Source: Pseudomonas aeruginosa PAO1 (lineage in GTDB: Bacteria; Pseudomonadota; Gammaproteobacteria; Pseudomonadales; Pseudomonadaceae). From it: a stretch of 64,000 nt of DNA. Shown piece by piece: positions 9,236 through 63,595 of this stretch. The notes below the pieces were generated by a model. The model worked only from the letters and a program-made list of their open reading frames with translations. It made no database searches and was not told where the DNA came from. The translations under genes were made by a program, and so were the position numbers. The DNA lies in NCBI RefSeq assembly GCF_000006765.1, contig NC_002516.2; one strand, written 5' to 3'. Each line of letters starts with the position of its first letter. Position 1 is the first letter of the stretch.

Positions 9236-9325
9236 CTTCCCACAAACCCCTGGGATGCCGCCAAGCCCTTGATCCACGGGCTTCCAGAGGCATTCATCAC
9301 CAGCTCGCCCACAGACTTATCCACA
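9236..9325 (+). promoter_or_regulatory. array of co-oriented DnaA boxes (one perfect)
   Basis: TTATCCACA at 9317-9325; degenerate TCGCCCACA 9305, TCATCACCA 9294, TGATCCACG 9270, CTTCCCACA 9236. Confidence 0.55.
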
Positions 9326-9369
9326 ATCCTTCAGGAAAGCGAGCGCGCCGCCAGCGCGCTCATGAGAAT

Positions 9370-9385
9370 TGGCACAGCCCCTGCA
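9370..9385 (+). promoter_or_regulatory. sigma54 promoter of nrsZ
   Basis: TGGCACAGCCCCTGCA, GG-N10-GC. Confidence 0.85.
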
Positions 9386-9395
9386 TAGGAGCAGA

Positions 9396-37581: not shown

Positions 37582-38802
37582 GTGTCCGAAACCTTCCCGT
37601 TCCTCACTGGCGACGCCCTGTCGCAGCGCTTCCTCGCGCTGGACGCGTTCCTCCTCGAACACCAGCGGCTCTGGCGACCCCGCCCGTTCAGCGAACCGAC
37701 CCTGGCGTGGGAAGCCGAACACGCCGAGCTGGCGTCCTGGCTGCGCGGGCGCAGCCTCGAACAGGCCGACGCGGAGCACAACCAGCCCACCCGCCTGGCC
37801 GCGCCCGCGCCTTATCCGCAGCTCGCCGCCCAAGCCACGGCGCTGGGCGCGGTCGGCGAACTGCCATTGGCGGAACGCCCGCAGGCACCGAACCGCTTCA
37901 ACGTCGACGTACCGGGACGCAAGTGGCAGCAGATCGGCCTGTTCGCCGGGCGCCTGCAGTTCGCCCGGCCGGTCGTCCACTGGCTCGACTGGTGCTCCGG
38001 CAAGGGCCATCTGGGCCGCCTGCTGGCCCATGCGGGGCAACCGCTGACCTGCCTCGAACACGATCCCGCGCTGGTCGCCGACGGACAGCGCCTGAGCGAC
38101 CGCCTGGGGCTCTCCGCCCACCACCTCCGCCAGGATGTGCTGGCCGCGGACTGCGCCGAGCGCCTGCTTCCCGGGCATACGCCAGTGGCCCTGCACGCTT
38201 GCGGCGAACTACACCTGCGCCTGCTGCGCCTGGCCAGCCAGGCCGGCTGTCGCCAACTGGCGGTGGCGCCATGCTGCTACAACCGCATTCCGGGGCCTTT
38301 CTACCAGCCACTCTCGCAAACAGCAGGCCGATCGCTGCTCGCGCTATCGCTTGACGACCTGCGCCTGCCCCTGAGCGAGACAGTCACCGCCAGCCAACGG
38401 GTCCGTCGCCAGCGCGACCAGTCGATGGCCCGGCGCCTGGGTTTCGACCTGCTGCAGCGCGAGCTACGCGGAATCAACCAGTACCTCAGCGTGCCTTCCC
38501 TTCCGGTGGCCTGGCTGGAACGTCCATACGCCGACTACTGTCGCGAACTCGCCGCCCTCAAGGGACTTCCCGAACCGGCCGCGCGCGACTGGCAGGCGCT
38601 GGAAGCGGCCGGCTGGAAGCGCCTGGCGATGGTTCGCAACCTGGAACTGGTGCGCGCCCTGTTCCGCCGCCCGCTGGAACTCTGGCTGCTGCTGGACCGC
38701 TGCCTGTATCTGGTCGAACAGGGCTATAGCGTCCGCCTGGGCGAGTTCTGTCCGACCTCCCTGTCTCCGCGAAACCTGCTGATCCTTGCGGAGCGCAGCT
38801 GA
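37582..38802 (+). CDS. SAM-dependent methyltransferase domain protein
   Basis: LDWCSGKGHLG, VALHACGELH, APCCY; GTG start. Confidence 0.85.
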   Translation: MSETFPFLTGDALSQRFLALDAFLLEHQRLWRPRPFSEPTLAWEAEHAELASWLRGRSLEQADAEHNQPTRLAAPAPYPQLAAQATALGAVGELPLAERPQAPNRFNVDVPGRKWQQIGLFAGRLQFARPVVHWLDWCSGKGHLGRLLAHAGQPLTCLEHDPALVADGQRLSDRLGLSAHHLRQDVLAADCAERLLPGHTPVALHACGELHLRLLRLASQAGCRQLAVAPCCYNRIPGPFYQPLSQTAGRSLLALSLDDLRLPLSETVTASQRVRRQRDQSMARRLGFDLLQRELRGINQYLSVPSLPVAWLERPYADYCRELAALKGLPEPAARDWQALEAAGWKRLAMVRNLELVRALFRRPLELWLLLDRCLYLVEQGYSVRLGEFCPTSLSPRNLLILAERS

Positions 38803-38820
38803 TACGGGTGTTCCGGATGG

Positions 38821-39029
38821 TTGCCCACACAACCTGTGGATAAGTCTGGTGACAAGTTCTGGGAAACATCTGCCGAGGGGCCCGTATCCAGGGGCGGTCA
38901 ATGCTGTTCAAAAAATGAACAGAAAAAATAAAATCCATATAAAACAATATCTTGATAACAACCGAGATAACCGCAGCGATTCTTAGAGCGTTTCCTTCCT
39001 ATCCCTTGCCCACTTGTGCATAAGCCTGG
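38821..39029. promoter_or_regulatory. DnaA-box / Fis / IHF composite element (candidate DARS2/datA-like locus)
   Basis: TTGCCCACA 38821, TGTGGATAA 38835, TGGTGACAA 38847, Fis consensus GTTCAAAAAATGAAC 38906-38920, IHF consensus TATCAAGATATTG (minus strand, 38945-38957), TTGCCCACT 39006, TGTGCATAA 39015. Confidence 0.6.
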
Positions 39030-39136
39030 CTTTCCGGTTAATCCGAAAGTGGACTTCAGCACCGGCAATAGTTGCAGAACGGCATCGCATGACGTTCGAA
39101 GGAACGGATTGTTCTTTTATTGCAACGGTTGAGCTC

Positions 39137-39191
39137 TTGTTAATCGCTGCCTAGGCAGTATTATTTTGAAACACTTTCCCTGCCTAGACAG
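39137..39191 (+). promoter_or_regulatory. promoter and two palindromic operators of the marR-opmG-emrAB operon
   Basis: TTGTTA-N16-TATTAT with CTGCCTAGGCAG (39147-39158) in the spacer and CTGCCTAGACAG (39180-39191) downstream. Confidence 0.65.
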
Positions 39192-39205
39192 CGATCCCCT
39201 CCACC

Positions 39206-39676
39206 ATGGGTCACTACAGCGCCTCCGACTTTCCCTTCAAGGGCTCCATTGGCCAGCTCATCGGCGTCAGTGCCGCGACCAAGGACCGCATCCTCGAGAA
39301 GCACCTCGCCGCGCTGGACATCACCGCCGCCCAGTTCAAGGTGCTGATCTTCGTCGGTCTCAACCGCGCCAACAGTCCGGTCGAACTGTGTCGCGAGCTG
39401 TCGGTGGACAGCGGCTCGATGACGCGCATGCTGGCGCGCCTGGAGAAAAAAGGGCTGCTGCTGCGCGGCCGCTGTCCCGAAGACCGCCGTTGCCTGCGCC
39501 TGGATCTCAGCGAAGCGGGACGGAAGGTCCAGGAGCAGCTTCCGCTGATCGCCTCGGCGGCGATGAACGAGCTGGTCGCCTGCCTGAGCACGGAAGAATT
39601 GCAGACGCTGACCCATCTGCTGACCAAGGTTCTGCTACACGCCGGCTGCCCGCGGGCCAGCCTGCAGGAGTCCTGA
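39206..39676 (+). CDS. MarR-family transcriptional regulator (EmrR-like)
   Basis: ITAAQFKVL, DSGSMTRMLARLEKKGLL, EDRR. Confidence 0.93.
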   Translation: MGHYSASDFPFKGSIGQLIGVSAATKDRILEKHLAALDITAAQFKVLIFVGLNRANSPVELCRELSVDSGSMTRMLARLEKKGLLLRGRCPEDRRCLRLDLSEAGRKVQEQLPLIASAAMNELVACLSTEELQTLTHLLTKVLLHAGCPRASLQES

Positions 39677-39679
39677 TCC

Positions 39680-41158
39680 ATGCCGTTCCCTCTTCTCCAT
39701 CCCTGGCCGCAGCGATTGGCGCTGGCCTCGGCGATACTGCTGGCCGCCGGCTGCGTCACTTCCGAAGGCCTGGAACCGAACGCCCGACTGCAACCGGCAG
39801 GCGCCCTCCAGGCGGGCAGGAGCCTGGACGGCGTAGCCCTTTCACCAGCGGCCTGGCCGCGCCAGGACTGGTGGACCGGGCTCGGCGACCGGCAGCTCGA
39901 CCAACTGATCGGCGAAGCCCTGCAAGGCACCCCCGACCTGCAGATCGCCGAGGCGCGTGCGCGCCAGGCGGCGGCAACGGCCCAGGCGCAAGATGCCGCG
40001 CGCCAGCCGACGCTGGACGCCAAGGCCAGCTACTCCGGCATCCGCGCGCCGACCAGCGTGGCCCCGGCACCGCTCGGCGGTCGCTATTCGGCGATCAAGT
40101 ACCTGTCGCTCGGCTTCAACTACGACTTCGACCTCTGGGGCGGCGAGCGCGCCGCCTGGGAAGCCGCCCTCGGCCAGGCCAATGCCGCCCGGATCGACAG
40201 CCAGGCCGCGCGCATCGGCCTCTCGGCGAGCATCGCCCGCGCCTACAGCGACCTCGCCCACGCCTTTACCGTGCGCGATCTCGCCGAGGAAGAACTGAAG
40301 CGCTCGCAGCGCATGACCGAGCTGAGCCAGAAGCGCATGAGCGCCGGACTCGACAGCAAGGTCCAGCTGCAACAGACGCAGACCCAGCTGGCTACCGCCC
40401 GCCAGCAGCTCAGCGCCGCCGAGCAGGACATCGCCAGCGCCCGCATCGCCCTCGCCGTGCTGCTGGGCAAGGGGCCCGATCGCGGTCTCGAACTGCAGCG
40501 CCCGCAACCGCTGAACCCGGCCAGCCTGAGCCTGCCCTCGGTGCTCCCGGCGGAACTGCTCGGCCGCCGCGCCGACATCGTTGCCGCGCGCTGGCGGGTC
40601 GAGGCGGCGCGCCGCAACATCGACTCGGCGAAGACCGAGTTCTATCCCAACCTCAATCTCGGCGCGATGGCCGGCCTCGCCGCCCTGCACACCAGCGACG
40701 TGTTGCAGGCGCCGAGCCGCTTCTTCCAGGTGGCGCCGGCGATCTCCCTGCCGATCTTCGACGGTGGCCGCCGCCGCGCCAACCTGGCCGAACGCGACGC
40801 CGACTACGACCTGGCCGTCGGCCAGTACAACAAGACGCTGGTCCAGGCCCTCGGCGAGGTCAGCGACGACCTCGGCAAGTTGCGCTCCCTGGAGCAGCAG
40901 GTGATCGACCAGCGCCAGGCCCGCGATATCGCCAGGTCCAACTTCGACCTGGCCATGCGTCGCTACGGCGAAGGCGTCGGCAGCTACCTCGACGCCCTCA
41001 GCGTGCAACAGCAACTGCTGGTCGCCGAACGCCAGCTGGCCAGCCTGGAGAGCCAGCAGATCGATCTTTCCGTCCAGCTGGTCCAGGCCCTGGGCGGCGG
41101 TTTCCAACCCGATTCCCGCTCCGCTGCGCTCGCTACCGCGAAAGCGCCGGCAGAATGA
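39680..41158 (+). CDS. opmG: outer-membrane efflux lipoprotein (OprM/NodT family), OpmG
   Basis: Lipobox LAAGC, PAELLGRRADIVAA, LVQALGGGF. Confidence 0.85.
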   Translation: MPFPLLHPWPQRLALASAILLAAGCVTSEGLEPNARLQPAGALQAGRSLDGVALSPAAWPRQDWWTGLGDRQLDQLIGEALQGTPDLQIAEARARQAAATAQAQDAARQPTLDAKASYSGIRAPTSVAPAPLGGRYSAIKYLSLGFNYDFDLWGGERAAWEAALGQANAARIDSQAARIGLSASIARAYSDLAHAFTVRDLAEEELKRSQRMTELSQKRMSAGLDSKVQLQQTQTQLATARQQLSAAEQDIASARIALAVLLGKGPDRGLELQRPQPLNPASLSLPSVLPAELLGRRADIVAARWRVEAARRNIDSAKTEFYPNLNLGAMAGLAALHTSDVLQAPSRFFQVAPAISLPIFDGGRRRANLAERDADYDLAVGQYNKTLVQALGEVSDDLGKLRSLEQQVIDQRQARDIARSNFDLAMRRYGEGVGSYLDALSVQQQLLVAERQLASLESQQIDLSVQLVQALGGGFQPDSRSAALATAKAPAE

Positions 41159-41172
41159 ACGAGGCACCCACC

Positions 41173-42357
41173 ATGACTACCGCCAACAGCGAAACCCCTG
41201 CCGGCAACCCGAAGCGCAAGCGCTGGTTGCTGATCCTGCTCGCCATGATCGTCCTCGCCACCCTGGCCAGCGTGGCCTGGGAGTTCTTCTACGGCCGCTG
41301 GCACGAGGACACCGACGACGCCTACATCAACGGCAACGTGGTACAGATCACCCCGCAGATCGTCGGCACCGTGGTCAGCATCGGCGCCGACGACGGCGAC
41401 CTGGTGCGCAAGGGCCAGGAACTGGTCAGGTTCGATCCCAGCGACGCCGACATCGCCCTCCAACGCGCCGAGGCCAACCTGGCCCACACCGTGCGCCAGG
41501 TGCGCGGGCTGTTCAGCAACGTCGACGGCTATCGCGCCGAGGTCGCCACCCGCAAGGTCGCGCTGGCCAAGGCCGAGGCCGACTACAAGCGGCGCAAGAA
41601 CCTCGCAGACGACGGCGCCATTTCCCAGGAGGAACTGGCCCACGCCCGCGACGCCTTGGACAGCGCGAAAGCCTCGCTGACCAGCTCGGAACAGCAGTTG
41701 AACACCAATCGCGCGCTGGTCGACGACACCCAGATCACCTCCCATCCGGACGTCAAGGCCGCCGCCGCGCAACTGCGCCAGGCCTACCTGGACGACGCCC
41801 GCTCGACCATCGTCGCGCCGGTCACCGGCTACGTCGCCAAGCGCAGCGTACAAGTCGGCCAGCGCGTGCAACCGGGCAATGCGCTGATGGCCGTGGTCCC
41901 GCTGGACCAGATCTGGATCGACGCCAACTTCAAGGAAACCCAGCTCAAGCACATGCGTATCGGCCAGCCGGTGGAGATCCGCTCCGACCTCTACGGCAGC
42001 GACGTGCGCTACAGCGGCACCGTCGACAGCCTCGGCGTGGGCACCGGCAGCGCGTTCTCCCTGCTGCCGGCGCAGAACGCCACCGGCAACTGGATCAAGA
42101 TCGTCCAGCGGGTGCCGGTGCGCATCCATATCGATCCGCAAGAATTGCAGAAGCATCCGCTGCGCATCGGCCTGTCGATGGACGTCAAGGTCGACCTGCA
42201 TGACCAGAGCGGCCCGGCCCTGGCCCAGCAACCACCGCGCGAAGCGCTGTTCTCCACCGATGTCTACCAGCAGCAACTGGCCTCGGCCGACAAGCTGATC
42301 GAACGCCTGATCGAAGCCAACCTCGCCGAAGACCACGGCAAGACCGCCCAGCGTTGA
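41173..42357 (+). CDS. emrA: EmrA-family membrane fusion protein
   Basis: TDDAYING, ANFKETQL, FSLLPAQNATGNWIKIVQRVPV; alternative start 41155. Confidence 0.92.
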   Translation: MTTANSETPAGNPKRKRWLLILLAMIVLATLASVAWEFFYGRWHEDTDDAYINGNVVQITPQIVGTVVSIGADDGDLVRKGQELVRFDPSDADIALQRAEANLAHTVRQVRGLFSNVDGYRAEVATRKVALAKAEADYKRRKNLADDGAISQEELAHARDALDSAKASLTSSEQQLNTNRALVDDTQITSHPDVKAAAAQLRQAYLDDARSTIVAPVTGYVAKRSVQVGQRVQPGNALMAVVPLDQIWIDANFKETQLKHMRIGQPVEIRSDLYGSDVRYSGTVDSLGVGTGSAFSLLPAQNATGNWIKIVQRVPVRIHIDPQELQKHPLRIGLSMDVKVDLHDQSGPALAQQPPREALFSTDVYQQQLASADKLIERLIEANLAEDHGKTAQR

Positions 42358-42367
42358 GCCTGCCAGC

Positions 42368-43897
42368 ATGAGCGAAAGCAGCAGCTTCTCCCCGCCCAGC
42401 CTGGTGATGGCGACCATCGGCCTGTCCCTGGCGACTTTCATGCAGGTGCTCGACACCACCATCGCCAACGTCGCCCTGCCGACCATCTCCGGCAACCTCG
42501 GGGTAAGTTCGGAACAGGGCACCTGGGTGATCACCTCGTTCGCCGTGAGCAACGCCATCGCCCTGCCGCTGACCGGCTGGCTGGCCCGGCGGGTCGGCGA
42601 GGTGCGCCTGTTCATCGCCGCCACGCTGCTGTTCGTACTCGCCTCGTTCCTCTGCGGCATCGCCCAGTCGATGCCTTCTCTGGTCGGCTTCCGCGCCTTG
42701 CAGGGCTTCGTCGCCGGGCCGCTGTATCCGATCACCCAGACCCTGCTGATCTCCATCTACCCACCGGCGAAGCGCGGCATGGCCCTGGCCCTGCTGGCGA
42801 TGGTCACGGTGGTGGCGCCGATCGCCGGGCCGATCCTCGGCGGCTGGATCACCGACGACTACAGCTGGCCGTGGATTTTCTTCATCAACGTGCCGGTCGG
42901 CCTGTTCGCCGCTTTCGTCGTCTACCAGCAACTGAAGGCACGCCCGGTGGTGATCAAGAAGGCGCCGATGGACTACGTCGGCCTGATCGCCCTGGTGGTC
43001 GGCGTCGGCGCCCTGCAGATCGTCCTCGACAAGGGCAACGACCTGGACTGGTTCGAGTCGAACTTCATCGTCGGCGGCGCGCTGATCGCGGCGATCGCCC
43101 TGGCCTTCTTCATCATCTGGGAATTCACCGACCGCCATCCGATCGTCAACCTGCGCCTGTTCGCCCACCGCAACTTCGCCGCCGGCACCCTGGCGCTGGT
43201 GCTGGGCTATGCCGCGTTCTTCGGCATCAACCTGCTGCTCCCGCAATGGCTACAGACCCAGATGGGCTACACCGCCACCTGGGCCGGGCTGGCCGCCGCG
43301 CCAATCGGCATCCTCCCGGTGTTCCTCTCGCCGCTGGTCGGCCGCTACGCCAACCATTTCGACCTACGCATGCTCGCCGGCCTGTCGTTCCTGGCGATGG
43401 CAATCACCTGCTTCATGCGGGCCAACTTCACCACCGAGGTCGACTACCAGCACATCGCCATCGTGCAGTTGATCATGGGGCTCGGCGTGGCGTTCTTCTT
43501 CATGCCGATCCTGAGCATCCTGCTCTCCGACCTGCCCCCCGACCAGATCGCCGACGGCTCCGGCCTGGCCACCTTCCTGCGCACCCTCGGCGGCAGCTTC
43601 GCCGCCTCGCTGACCACCTGGATCTGGCACCGCCGCGCCACCCAGCACCACGCCTACCTCAGCGAAAACATCAGCCTCTACGACCCGGCCACCCACGAAA
43701 CCCTCGCCCAGCTCGGCGGCAACACCCAGGCGAACGCGGCGCTGCTCGACCGGATGGTGCAGAGCCAGGCCTACATGATGTCCACCATCGACTACTTCAC
43801 CATGCTCGGCTGGCTGTTCCTCGCCCTGCTGGTGATCATCTGGCTGGCCCGCCCGCCGTTCGGCGCCAAGCCCGGCGCGGCCGCCTCCGGGCACTGA
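42368..43897 (+). CDS. emrB: EmrB-family DHA2 MFS efflux transporter
   Basis: MQVLDTTIANVALP, GPILGGWITDDYSWPWIFFINVP. Confidence 0.93.
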   Translation: MSESSSFSPPSLVMATIGLSLATFMQVLDTTIANVALPTISGNLGVSSEQGTWVITSFAVSNAIALPLTGWLARRVGEVRLFIAATLLFVLASFLCGIAQSMPSLVGFRALQGFVAGPLYPITQTLLISIYPPAKRGMALALLAMVTVVAPIAGPILGGWITDDYSWPWIFFINVPVGLFAAFVVYQQLKARPVVIKKAPMDYVGLIALVVGVGALQIVLDKGNDLDWFESNFIVGGALIAAIALAFFIIWEFTDRHPIVNLRLFAHRNFAAGTLALVLGYAAFFGINLLLPQWLQTQMGYTATWAGLAAAPIGILPVFLSPLVGRYANHFDLRMLAGLSFLAMAITCFMRANFTTEVDYQHIAIVQLIMGLGVAFFFMPILSILLSDLPPDQIADGSGLATFLRTLGGSFAASLTTWIWHRRATQHHAYLSENISLYDPATHETLAQLGGNTQANAALLDRMVQSQAYMMSTIDYFTMLGWLFLALLVIIWLARPPFGAKPGAAASGH

Positions 43898-43930
43898 GGA
43901 CGAACGGCATTCGGGCAGGAAAATCAGTGG

Positions 43931-43958
43931 TTTACTCCTGGCGGCGGCTGGCTATAAT
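43931..43958 (+). promoter_or_regulatory. sigma70 promoter of tRNA-Thr
   Basis: TTTACT-N16-TATAAT. Confidence 0.8.
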
Positions 43959-43970
43959 GTCGCCCTCTTC

Positions 43971-44046
<76 letters not shown>

Positions 44047-52834: not shown

Positions 52835-54114
52835 CCATTCTGTTCCTCTTCCTGCTGCTCTTCCTGCTGATGTTCATCGGCGTGCCGATCGCCGTCTCCC
52901 TGGGTCTCTCCGGCGCACTGACGATCCTCCTGTTCAGCCCGGACTCGGTACGCTCGCTGGCGATCAAGCTGTTCGAGACCTCCGAGCACTACACCCTGCT
53001 GGCGATCCCGTTCTTCCTGCTCTCCGGCGCGTTCATGACCACCGGTGGCGTGGCGCGGCGCCTGATCGACTTCGCCAACGCCTGCGTCGGACACATCCGT
53101 GGCGGCCTGGCGATCGCCGCGGTGCTCGCCTGCATGCTCTTCGCCGCGCTATCCGGCTCGTCTCCGGCAACGGTGGCGGCAGTGGGTTCGATCGCCATCG
53201 CCGGCATGGTCCGCTCGGGTTATCCACAGGCGTTCGGCGCCGGGATCGTCTGCAACGCCGGCACCCTCGGCATCCTCATCCCGCCATCGATCGTGATGGT
53301 GGTCTACGCCGCCGCCACCGAGACCTCGGTGGGCAAGCTGTTCATCGCCGGCGTGGTTCCGGGGCTGCTGCTGGGACTGATCCTGATGGTGGTGATCTAC
53401 ATCGTCGCCCGGGTCAAGAAGCTGCCCGCCATGCCAAGGGTCAGTCTGCGCGAATGGCTGGCCAGCGCGCGCAAGGCGCTGTGGGGGCTGCTGCTGATGG
53501 TGATCATCCTCGGCGGCATCTATTCCGGCGCCTTCACCCCCACCGAGGCCGCCGCCGTCGCCGCGGTGTACTCGGCCTTCGTCGCACTGTTCGTCTACCG
53601 CGACATGCGCCTGAGCGAATGCCCGAAGGTGCTGCTGGAGTCCGGCAAGCTGACCATCATGCTGATGTTCATCATCGCCAACGCCATGCTCTTCGCCCAC
53701 GTGCTGACCACCGAGCAGATACCGCAGAGCATCGCCAGTTGGGTCACGGAACTGGGACTTTCGCCATGGATGTTCCTGCTGGTGGTGAACATCGTGCTGC
53801 TGATCGCCGGCAACTTCATGGAGCCTTCGGCGATCATCCTGATCCTGGCGCCGATCTTCTTCCCCATCGCCATGGAGCTGGGCATCGATCCGATCCACCT
53901 CGGCATCATCATGGTGGTGAACATGGAGATCGGCCTGATCACGCCGCCGGTCGGGCTCAACCTGTTCGTCACCTCGGCGGTCACCGGCATGCCGCTGGGC
54001 GCGACCATCCGCGCAGCGCTGCCGTGGCTCATGATCCTGCTGGTGTTCCTGATCATCGTGACCTACATCCCGGCGGTATCCCTGGCATTGCCGAACTGGC
54101 TGGGGATGAGCTGA
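52831..54114 (+). CDS. dctM: TRAP large permease
   Basis: LAIPFFLLSG, GTLGILIPPSI, LITPPVGLNL. Confidence 0.96.
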   Translation: MTILFLFLLLFLLMFIGVPIAVSLGLSGALTILLFSPDSVRSLAIKLFETSEHYTLLAIPFFLLSGAFMTTGGVARRLIDFANACVGHIRGGLAIAAVLACMLFAALSGSSPATVAAVGSIAIAGMVRSGYPQAFGAGIVCNAGTLGILIPPSIVMVVYAAATETSVGKLFIAGVVPGLLLGLILMVVIYIVARVKKLPAMPRVSLREWLASARKALWGLLLMVIILGGIYSGAFTPTEAAAVAAVYSAFVALFVYRDMRLSECPKVLLESGKLTIMLMFIIANAMLFAHVLTTEQIPQSIASWVTELGLSPWMFLLVVNIVLLIAGNFMEPSAIILILAPIFFPIAMELGIDPIHLGIIMVVNMEIGLITPPVGLNLFVTSAVTGMPLGATIRAALPWLMILLVFLIIVTYIPAVSLALPNWLGMS

Positions 54115-62907: not shown

Positions 62908-63470
62908 GCCTGGTACTCGCCGCGCTGGGTGAGCAGGTCGCGCACCAGGTACAGCGCGGCCAGGGCACGGCCTTCGCTGAACTGGGCGTGCTGGGCCAGG
63001 CTCGAGAGTTCGCGCAGGCTGATGCGATCGACGCTCATCGGCTCCGGCTCGTCGCCCGGCAGGCGCTCCTCGTAGAGGTCGCGCGCCAGCACCACCTGGA
63101 TGCGCTGGCTCATGTAGCCCGGCGACAGCGACAGTTCGGTGATGTGCTCCAGTTGCCGGGCACCGTAGCCCGCTTCCTCCTTGAGTTCGCGGTTGGCCGC
63201 CGCGAGGATGTCCTCGCCCGGCTCGACCAGGCCCTTGGGCAACGACAACTGGTATTCGTCGACTCCGGCGCAATATTCCTCCACCAGCACCGCGTGCTCG
63301 GCATCGAGCATGGCCACCACCATCACCGCACCGTAGCCCTGGCCCTTGCCGACCAGACGCTCGTAGGTGCGCTCGACGCCATTGCTGAAGCGCAGTTGCA
63401 ACTCCTCGACATCGAACAGTCGGCTCTTCGCGACGATCTCGCTGGCGAGTACGGTGGGTTTCTGACGCAT
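62904..63470 (-). CDS. nudE: ADP compounds hydrolase (Nudix)
   Basis: LRFSNGVERTYERL; Nudix box GLVEPGEDILAAANRELKEEAGY. Confidence 0.94.
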   Translation of the reverse strand: MRQKPTVLASEIVAKSRLFDVEELQLRFSNGVERTYERLVGKGQGYGAVMVVAMLDAEHAVLVEEYCAGVDEYQLSLPKGLVEPGEDILAAANRELKEEAGYGARQLEHITELSLSPGYMSQRIQVVLARDLYEERLPGDEPEPMSVDRISLRELSSLAQHAQFSEGRALAALYLVRDLLTQRGEYQA

Positions 63471-63595
63471 GTGGATAACTCCTTGGCGAAGCCGGCGGGT
63501 TATCATACCCCGGCTTTTCCGATTATCCCTGTCGGAGATTGATGGGAAGCGACAGATTTCCGCATCGATCGCGACGAACCGCGACAAGAGCCGCC

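Follow-up and report, generated by a model that had tools for sequence, protein, structure and literature searches.

Within a stretch of 64,000 nucleotides from the Pseudomonas aeruginosa PAO1 chromosome (contig NC_002516.2; this whole stretch is referred to below as the window), a methyltransferase gene is followed by a gap that ends at a MarR-family gene, and efflux genes and a tRNA-Thr(UGU) gene lie further downstream (Table 1). Adjoining the methyltransferase gene in this gap is a non-coding element of about 200 bp, with a GC content of 43-51% compared with 66% for the window, which carries DnaA-box, Fis-type and integration host factor (IHF)-type motifs. A preliminary description of the sequence had proposed the element as a candidate DnaA-regulatory locus resembling DARS2 or datA of Escherichia coli (DARS, DnaA-reactivating sequence). 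Pseudomonads possess DnaA, IHF, and Fis. Our comparison of orthologous loci supports the element as a candidate of this kind through the conservation of its motifs, their spacing, and a core with DARS geometry.

The element opens with a three-box core (38821-38855), TTGCCCACA-CAACC-TGTGGATAA-GTC-TGGTGACAA, in which spacers of 5 bp (N5) and 3 bp (N3) separate box I from box II and box II from box III, respectively. The preliminary description had placed a DnaA-box triplet with these spacers at 38821, 38835, and 38847, and all three boxes were found there, with 2, 0, and 3 mismatches, respectively. Its Fis consensus at 38906-38920 also proved to be an exact match, and the AT-rich character of the region was confirmed. 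The IHF match reported at 38945-38957 held in part: CAATATCTTGATA matches YAANNNNTTGATW exactly on the minus strand, but this match is specific to P. aeruginosa and overlaps the core of an IHF-type site on the plus strand (38941-38953), which is the conserved one. At the far end, TTGCCCACT and TGTGCATAA (39006-39023) abut without a spacer in P. aeruginosa, as the opposed pair described earlier, but the TTGCCCACT half shows no conservation: information content is low over columns 39006-39013, and P. paraeruginosa already carries mutations in this half. The two ends of the element do form a direct repeat in P. aeruginosa, where box II and the distal box lie 180 bp apart, but the direct repeat is not conserved beyond this species.

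To gauge how often such arrangements arise by chance, we compared the window with 100 shuffles for each pattern. Two strong boxes in the configuration TGTGNAWAA-N165-185-TGTGNAWAA occurred once in the 64-kb window and 0.00 times in the shuffles, and the same figures were obtained for the three-box core pattern. DnaA boxes with at most one mismatch numbered 10 in the window, compared with 2.6 expected. Further perfect DnaA boxes are located at 53220-53228 and 63470-63478, for a total of four perfect boxes in 64 kb at 66% GC; one of these two lies inside an open reading frame, and the other overlaps an ATG start (ggagTTATCCACAtgcg, minus strand).

We aligned 18 homologues of the methyltransferase, which is 98-100% identical to methyltransferases of P. 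aeruginosa, and used them to retrieve 80 orthologous loci, each from a different species of Pseudomonas, Azotobacter, or their relatives. The methyltransferases encoded at these loci are 63-94% identical to that of the window. In 77 of the 80 loci, a perfect TGTGGATAA is followed, 175-182 bp downstream (mode 177), by a co-oriented TGTG[C/A]ATAA. Box II typically sits about 20-40 bp past the methyltransferase stop codon, although this distance reaches 161 bp in one locus. At the 78th locus, the contig ends just past the first box. Of the 81 sequences made up of these loci and the window, 78 retain the element, 77 completely and one truncated by the contig end. The remaining two loci, which belong to Stutzerimonas stutzeri K1 and P. 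oryzagri, have undergone rearrangement; the element is absent from this position, and neither it nor tRNA-Thr was found within 3 kb past the methyltransferase. Both have palindromes resembling repetitive extragenic palindromic (REP) sequences 3′ of the methyltransferase gene, followed by the apparent 3′ end of a convergent gene.

The preliminary description had made its proposal depend beforehand on motif conservation exceeding that of the intergenic background. The two strong boxes are retained in 77 of the 80 loci, whereas the sequences of the spacers between conserved blocks are at background conservation, with their lengths held to about 1-3 bp; the proposal thus clearly withstood this test. 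The column profile resolved five conserved islands: C-TGTGGATAA-s-T-n-TGT(T/G)GAT; CTG-nn-CA-TTTTTT-R-nn-CA; AAA; AAAACA-r-nnnn-TT-R; and T-TGTG-C-ATAA-G. Box II itself, the C preceding it (38834), and T38845 are invariant in all 78 aligned sequences; since the sequences were selected on the boxes, the invariance of the box letters is partly by construction, and the unbiased figure is 77 of 80. The distal box varies solely between C and A, at the N position of TTATNCACA. The consensus TTWTNCACA, which this box fits, is the one applied to P. aeruginosa in a 2026 paper on DnaA binding. These invariant 9-mers are DnaA boxes, with variation confined to the position at which DnaA tolerates it.

The other two boxes of the core are weaker and differ in how widely they are kept. 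Box III is present at N3 in all 78 species, with 2-3 mismatches in 71 of them; its T, G, and T are invariant or nearly so, and its genus consensus is TGTTGAT(A/G)(G/A). Box I occurs with at most three mismatches at exactly N5 in 55 of the 78 species, in 35 of which it reads TTACCCACA or TTGCCCACA. When the limit was lowered to two mismatches, 46 species had the box at N5, compared with one at any other spacing. In about 23 of the 78 species, mainly of the P. fluorescens-type lineage, box I is lost (four or more mismatches) and the rest of the element is kept. Fluorescens-type loci, which make up the lineage without box I, also carry a palindrome, CGTGGATCCAATATCCACG, in the first spacer, about +28 to +46 from box II, which consists of two diverging DnaA-box-like half sites, ATATCCACG and CGTGGATCC.

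Between the DnaA boxes, the Fis-type and IHF-type sites are held at constrained positions. G38906 and C38920 of the Fis-type site are each kept in 77 of 78 species. An exact match to the consensus GnnYAnnnnnTRnnC (Kasho et al.) was found at +70 to +72 from box II in 48 of 78 species, whereas the expectation for the whole of the central 70 bp was 3.7. Among the 72 species carrying the anchor pattern, the distance from box II to the Fis-type G is 71 ± 1 bp, and the IHF-type core follows 32-35 bp from the Fis-type site. P. aeruginosa and P. paraeruginosa have an A6 centre in the Fis-type site, whereas almost all other species have T6; this exchange keeps the palindromic Fis pattern and destroys what would be the U-tract of a plus-strand terminator. 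The flanking arms of the site make up a perfect 7-bp palindrome, CTGTTCA/TGAACAG.

The IHF-type core is conserved on the plus strand as AAAACAR-N4-TTR, with A38941, C38945, A38946, T38952, and T38953 invariant and position 38954 a true R (A in 40 species, G in 38). For the spacing analysis, we used the relaxed anchor ANNNCA-N5-TTR, which is matched in 78 of 78 species; measured from this core, the distal box lies at 73 ± 1 bp in 75 of 78. One turn upstream of the core, the AAA at 38930-38932 of the A-tract is kept in 65-77 of the 78 species. Strong IHF sites are known to have an A/T-rich tract upstream of their core. Since the Pseudomonas core departs from the canonical consensus in most species, as described below, its assignment to IHF is plausible but not firm, and we refer to it as IHF-type. 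The fixed spacings persist across species in which the flanking protein is 63-75% identical. Short invariant blocks separated by stretches of free sequence but fixed length fit a DNA scaffold for several proteins, and not an RNA or a coding region. A similar spacing constraint has been reported for E. coli datA and DARS2.

Table 1. Coordinates in the window of the element, its motifs, and the neighbouring genes.
Feature	Position	Strand	Remarks
Whole element	38821-39025		Directly 3′ of the methyltransferase gene; ends before the marR-bearing insertion
DnaA box I-like TTGCCCACA	38821-38829	+	2 mismatches to TTATCCACA; opposed to box II
DnaA box II TGTGGATAA	38835-38843	-	Perfect consensus; predicted high-affinity anchor
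DnaA box III-like weak box TGGTGACAA	38847-38855	-	3 mismatches; co-oriented with box II
Fis-type site GTTCAAAAAATGAAC	38906-38920		Exact match to GNNYANNNNNTRNNC
A-tract AAAAAATAAAA	38923-38933		5′ of the IHF-type core
IHF-type site	38941-38957	+	Core AAACAATATCTTG (38941-38953), 1 mismatch to WATCAANNNNTTR
Distal DnaA box TGTGCATAA (TTATGCACA)	39015-39023	-	Fits TTWTNCACA; co-oriented with box II
Methyltransferase gene	37582-38802	+	406 aa; Methyltransf_32 domain
Gap from methyltransferase gene to marR			403 bp; element fills the first half
MarR-family gene	39206-39676	+	
Outer-membrane efflux protein gene	39680-41158	+	
Region without annotation	41159-42367		About 1.2 kb; candidate membrane-fusion gene, implied only by the emrAB label of the preliminary description
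Major facilitator superfamily transporter gene	42368-43897	+	
tRNA-Thr(UGU)	43971-44046	+	

DnaA boxes at this locus are not confined to the intergenic element. Several lineages carry a perfect TTATCCACA within the methyltransferase coding sequence and in opposite orientation to box II; relative to box II, it lies at -249/-261 in fluorescens-type loci and at about -507 or about -1004 in other lineages. In 14 fluorescens-type species, which belong to the lineage without box I, the coding-sequence box is written GAC-TTA-TCC-ACA-G and is invariant, whereas synonymous sites on either side vary. Among the 976 leucine codons of these genes, TTA is the least used, with 35 occurrences, 14 of which are at the box site. 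The encoded protein segment is itself variable, reading LST in the fluorescens-type species and LPE in P. aeruginosa. The presence of an invariant box written with rare codons amid variable synonymous sites shows selection at the DNA level for DnaA boxes at this locus. At the position equivalent to -1004 (37812-37820), P. aeruginosa has only TTATCCGCA.

We also determined where the locus lies on the chromosome. In a P. aeruginosa chromosome of 6,264,417 bp, the methyltransferase locus occupies 5,803,095-5,805,315, so that about 459 kb separate the element from the record end. In three other complete genomes, with sizes of 5.28, 4.41, and 4.65 Mb, the distance between the methyltransferase locus and the record boundary is 345, 64, and 235 kb, respectively. 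In all four, the locus thus falls at 1.5-7.3% of the chromosome from the boundary, which random placement would produce about 5 times in 10,000. This placement fits records that begin at dnaA, as the PAO1 reference does. The locus is origin-proximal, on the assumption that the four records start at dnaA. The distance in P. aeruginosa agrees, if its record does so, with the earlier estimate of several hundred kb from oriC and a position comparable to that of datA, which in E. coli lies about 470 kb from oriC (4.39 versus 3.92 Mb).

Judged by the letters and spacings conserved across the genus, the element is probably a non-origin DnaA control locus, that is, a scaffold of fixed geometry for DnaA, IHF, and Fis. 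We propose that DnaA would have high affinity for the perfect box II and for the distal box with its consensus sequence, and that the DnaA bound there would recruit additional molecules to the weak box III and also to the opposed box I in species that have it. Centrally bound IHF, aided by Fis 33 bp away, would bend the AT-rich middle and thereby bring the two DnaA-loaded arms, of about 108 and 69 bp, together. The resulting DnaA oligomer could then alter the amount of active DnaA available to oriC. In overall architecture, the element is datA-like at the level of motifs, and the datA-type features, namely co-oriented strong boxes around an IHF-type site and a weak co-oriented box, of the kind that datA requires, are the universal ones, being found in all 78 species. 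We lean weakly toward datA because of these shared features, because the locus is origin-proximal, and because many species have lost box I. A DnaA control locus with this lean is our best explanation, though we put it just short of probable. More tentatively still, the element may have a datA-like negative role, in which titration of DnaA, IHF-dependent hydrolysis of DnaA-ATP, or both would set in soon after the origin-proximal locus has been duplicated.

Several observations weigh against this interpretation. The canonical IHF consensus was matched with at most one mismatch in only 14 of 78 species, compared with about 5 by chance, and in most species the IHF-type core departs from WATCAANNNNTTR at the T of WATC. 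The element is missing from its position at the two rearranged loci mentioned above, and the origin-proximal placement depends on where the four sequence records start. No chromatin immunoprecipitation data set for DnaA, IHF, or Fis at this site was found in the literature searched. The conserved distance of 95-102 bp between the distal box and tRNA-Thr in the ancestral arrangement possibly reflects some coupling to transcription of the tRNA. The longer arms and the Fis-type site are departures from datA, as detailed below, and the exact DARS core geometry argues for reactivation of DnaA, which is the opposite direction.

As a site of DARS-type reactivation, the element would hold ADP-DnaA head-to-head on boxes I and II, and also on box III, and, with Fis and IHF as at E. 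coli DARS2, cause ADP release and ATP rebinding, so that initiation would be promoted. We read the E. coli loci directly from MG1655. The core of DARS1 is TTATCCACT-ATTCC-TGTGGATAA-CCA-TGTGTATTA, and that of DARS2 is TTATCCCAG-CTTTC-TGTGGATAA-CAT-GGTGTAAGA. Common to both and to the Pseudomonas core are a box I opposed to boxes II and III, spacers of 5 and 3 bp, a perfect box II (TGTGGATAA) preceded by C, and degenerate boxes I and III. This I-5 bp-II-3 bp-III layout, in which box II is perfect and boxes I and III are degenerate, defines the DARS core; the published definition specifies a box I in opposite orientation, equal spacing at both loci, and a 5-bp spacer between boxes I and II. The confinement of box I, when present, to exactly N5 also speaks for this reading, as does the conservation of both a Fis-type and an IHF-type site at constrained distances, which DARS2 requires. 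By contrast, box I and box II are both indispensable in E. coli DARS, whereas box I is missing in about 30% of the Pseudomonas species, which keep all else. The Fis-type and IHF-type sites of the Pseudomonas element are found about 70-105 bp from the core on its box III side, whereas the IHF-binding sites IBS1-2 of E. coli DARS2 lie about 200 bp away on the box I side. Unlike DARS, the element has a second strong co-oriented box 177 bp away, and unlike DARS2, which is located at mid-replichore, it is origin-proximal. The neighbouring genes differ as well, with a methyltransferase gene and tRNA-Thr in place of rppH-mutH (DARS2) or bioD-uvrB (DARS1), so that the element is not a positional orthologue of either. 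On balance, we regard a DARS-type function as rather unlikely. A BLAST search with the core against all complete E. coli genomes gave no match, the query being too short for that database.

A DARS-like core also occurs elsewhere in the window, downstream of ntrC (9289-9340), with a similar layout and the sequence TCGCCCACA-GAC-TTATCCACA-ATCCT-TCAGGAAAG. A 12-mer, GACTTATCCACA, is common to this core and the reverse complement of box II. Some 50 bp past the core is a sigma54-type promoter, TGGCACagcccCTGCA (9371-9386), and then three tandem repeats of about 85 bp, which presumably resemble the small RNA NrsZ. No counterpart of this core was found in 20 related metagenomic loci, of which only one or two are from close Pseudomonas relatives.

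Analysis of the region beyond the distal box bears on whether the element serves transcription. In 48 loci, tRNA-Thr(UGU) begins 91-102 bp past the distal box, which is the ancestral arrangement, and conservation is high in its promoter, TTTACT-N16/17-TATAAT followed by a GC-rich discriminator. Unrelated DNA, 0.2 to more than 2.8 kb long, intervenes between the distal box and this promoter in at least 24 other lineages. The insert of P. aeruginosa measures 4,956 bp and contains the efflux genes as well as marR; beyond it, the tRNA has retained its promoter, at 43931-43958. The ancestral neighbour of the element is tRNA-Thr, and the marR block (39030-43930) is a lineage-specific insertion; the preliminary description was right to place the element between the methyltransferase gene and marR, but marR is not its ancestral neighbour. 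All insertions in these 24 or more lineages lie past the distal box, and none is within the element, whose blocks and spacings are retained. The inserts at this same point differ between lineages, from 227 bp to more than 2.8 kb, and an integrase gene begins some 500 bp past the methyltransferase in Azorhizophilus paspali; the 5′ side of the tRNA-Thr promoter is a recurrent insertion point.

The marR gene of P. aeruginosa has its own promoter, TTGTTA-16-TATTAT, at 39137-39164, beyond the element. Overlapping this promoter is a likely MarR operator, a 16-bp inverted repeat, ATCGCTGCCTAGGCAG / CTGCCTAGACAGCGAT, at 39143-39195. Within the element, GCAGCGATT (38973-38981) is a 9-nt exact complement of the start of the operator's left arm together with the preceding A (AATCGCTGC). 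The same position reads CGCACAAAA in other species. About 0.35 such matches are expected by chance, so that this complementarity may be meaningless.

A purely transcriptional function would involve no control of DnaA; instead, DnaA, Fis, and IHF would regulate tRNA-Thr(UGU), or would block or terminate the methyltransferase transcript. Stable-RNA promoters are targets of Fis-dependent upstream activating sequences, and the constant distance between the distal box and a highly conserved tRNA promoter in 48 loci fits such a function. In addition, DnaA acts as a transcription factor at gidA in P. aeruginosa according to the literature. However, the Fis-type and IHF-type sites would lie near -195 and -160 from the tRNA start, far from usual Fis positions, and the element has survived its separation from the tRNA promoter in at least 24 lineages, P. 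aeruginosa included, which argues that it is not there to serve this promoter. As for termination, some clades have a long hairpin abutting the T-run, in 29 of 78 species by minimum free energy folding, but the advantage of the spacer over shuffled sequences is only about 2 kcal/mol. A strict scan for an intrinsic terminator at the T-run gave 11 of 78, compared with 5.1 in shuffles, which is not above background, and in P. aeruginosa the A6 centre abolishes the plus-strand U-tract. A terminator at the T-run is possible as a lineage-specific overlay. With the evidence on both sides considered, we find it improbable that the element is a transcriptional region only.

An equally improbable arrangement, or one marginally more so, is a hybrid locus in which a DARS-type head-to-head core and datA-type strong boxes bridged by IHF would inactivate or reactivate DnaA depending on Fis and IHF occupancy, and hence on growth phase and cell cycle. 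If this were true, the element would be the single non-origin DnaA switch of pseudomonads and possibly near the ancestral form that gave rise, by specialisation, to the separate datA and DARS loci of enterobacteria.

Searches for other kinds of function gave negative results. With Rfam at a permissive threshold, the region 38300-39700 yielded chance-level matches only, the best having an E-value of 2.2 and a score far below the gathering score. RNAalifold returned a consensus energy of 0.0 and no structure for 53 non-redundant sequences on both strands. A promoter scan detected no conserved promoter, and the one weak sigma70-like match, in the AT-rich core (38907-38934), is not conserved. An oriC-type origin was considered and rejected: the element has only 3-4 boxes and no repeated 13-mer family, and the sole direct repeat of its AT-rich core is a pair of 10-nt A-runs. 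That the element belongs to another DNA-binding system (nucleoid-organising or recombination), encodes a small RNA, or is a cryptic origin is very improbable in view of these results, of invariant 9-mers that fit the DnaA box and vary solely at its degenerate position, of too few boxes and no 13-mer-type unwinding element, and of its presence in species without an insertion, even though AT-rich regions attract many nucleoid proteins, the site is an insertion hot spot with an integrase gene in one neighbour, and a second origin-like region, oriCII, is known from the literature elsewhere in P. aeruginosa.

Control of DnaA by datA, DARS1, and DARS2 has been worked out almost solely in E. coli, and the E. 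coli literature describes the conservation of DARS2 only for species close to E. coli. In the literature searched, which was without the original DARS paper (Fujimitsu et al. 2009) and most subscription journals, we found no description of a datA- or DARS-type locus in Pseudomonas, consistent with the preliminary description, which knew of none characterised in P. aeruginosa. A 2026 P. aeruginosa paper on DnaA at oriCII and a 2025 preprint on the origins of Pseudomonadaceae and Halomonadaceae describe no such locus. With its conserved motifs at almost fixed spacing, the element is a strong candidate to be the first non-origin site of replication control in Pseudomonas, and the motifs define a precise 200-bp target throughout the genus. 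Natural variants have been mapped as well: box I is lost in one lineage, the T-run is flipped in P. aeruginosa, and boxes have been recruited into the coding sequence. If the element is functional, the principle of datA and DARS would be older and more widespread than the enterics, and the element would reveal its essential architectural features and open replication timing in Pseudomonas to direct experiment.

Among the closest known systems, datA resembles the DnaA control locus proposed here in overall order. Read on the opposite strand, the Pseudomonas element consists of a strong box, 69-70 bp, the IHF-type site, 108-110 bp, a weak and a strong box, 5 bp, and an opposed box. E. coli datA consists of box 2, 65 bp, its IHF-binding site (IBS), 97 bp, box 3, 3 bp, and the opposed box 4. 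The low-affinity box 7 of datA is inferred to lie between the IBS and box 3, where the yjeV promoter is located, from its description as overlapping PyjeV; our first guess, which put it next to box 2, was dropped because the literature places box 7 at that promoter. At the motif level, both loci thus have co-oriented strong boxes 160-180 bp apart that flank a single IHF or IHF-type site in the same relative orientation. Both also have a low-affinity co-oriented box, which in datA is presumed to lie next to one strong box, and then an opposed box, an AT-rich centre, and an adjoining tRNA gene.

The two loci differ in several respects. The arms of the Pseudomonas element are 4-5 and 11-13 bp longer than those of datA (69-70 and 108-110 bp versus 65 and 97 bp), its opposed box is at N5 instead of N3, and it contains a Fis-type site, of which datA has none. 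It lies 3′ of a protein gene and upstream of tRNA-Thr, whereas datA is located downstream of glyVXY and is regulated by transcription reading through from these genes. The element is not syntenic with the orn-glyVXY-queG context of datA.

Bacillus subtilis and Streptomyces coelicolor have DnaA-box clusters for which we know of no IHF/Fis architecture or DARS-type core. These clusters are oriC-proximal, repress untimely initiation, and are cited as datA analogues; like the Pseudomonas element, they are non-origin sites located near the origin.

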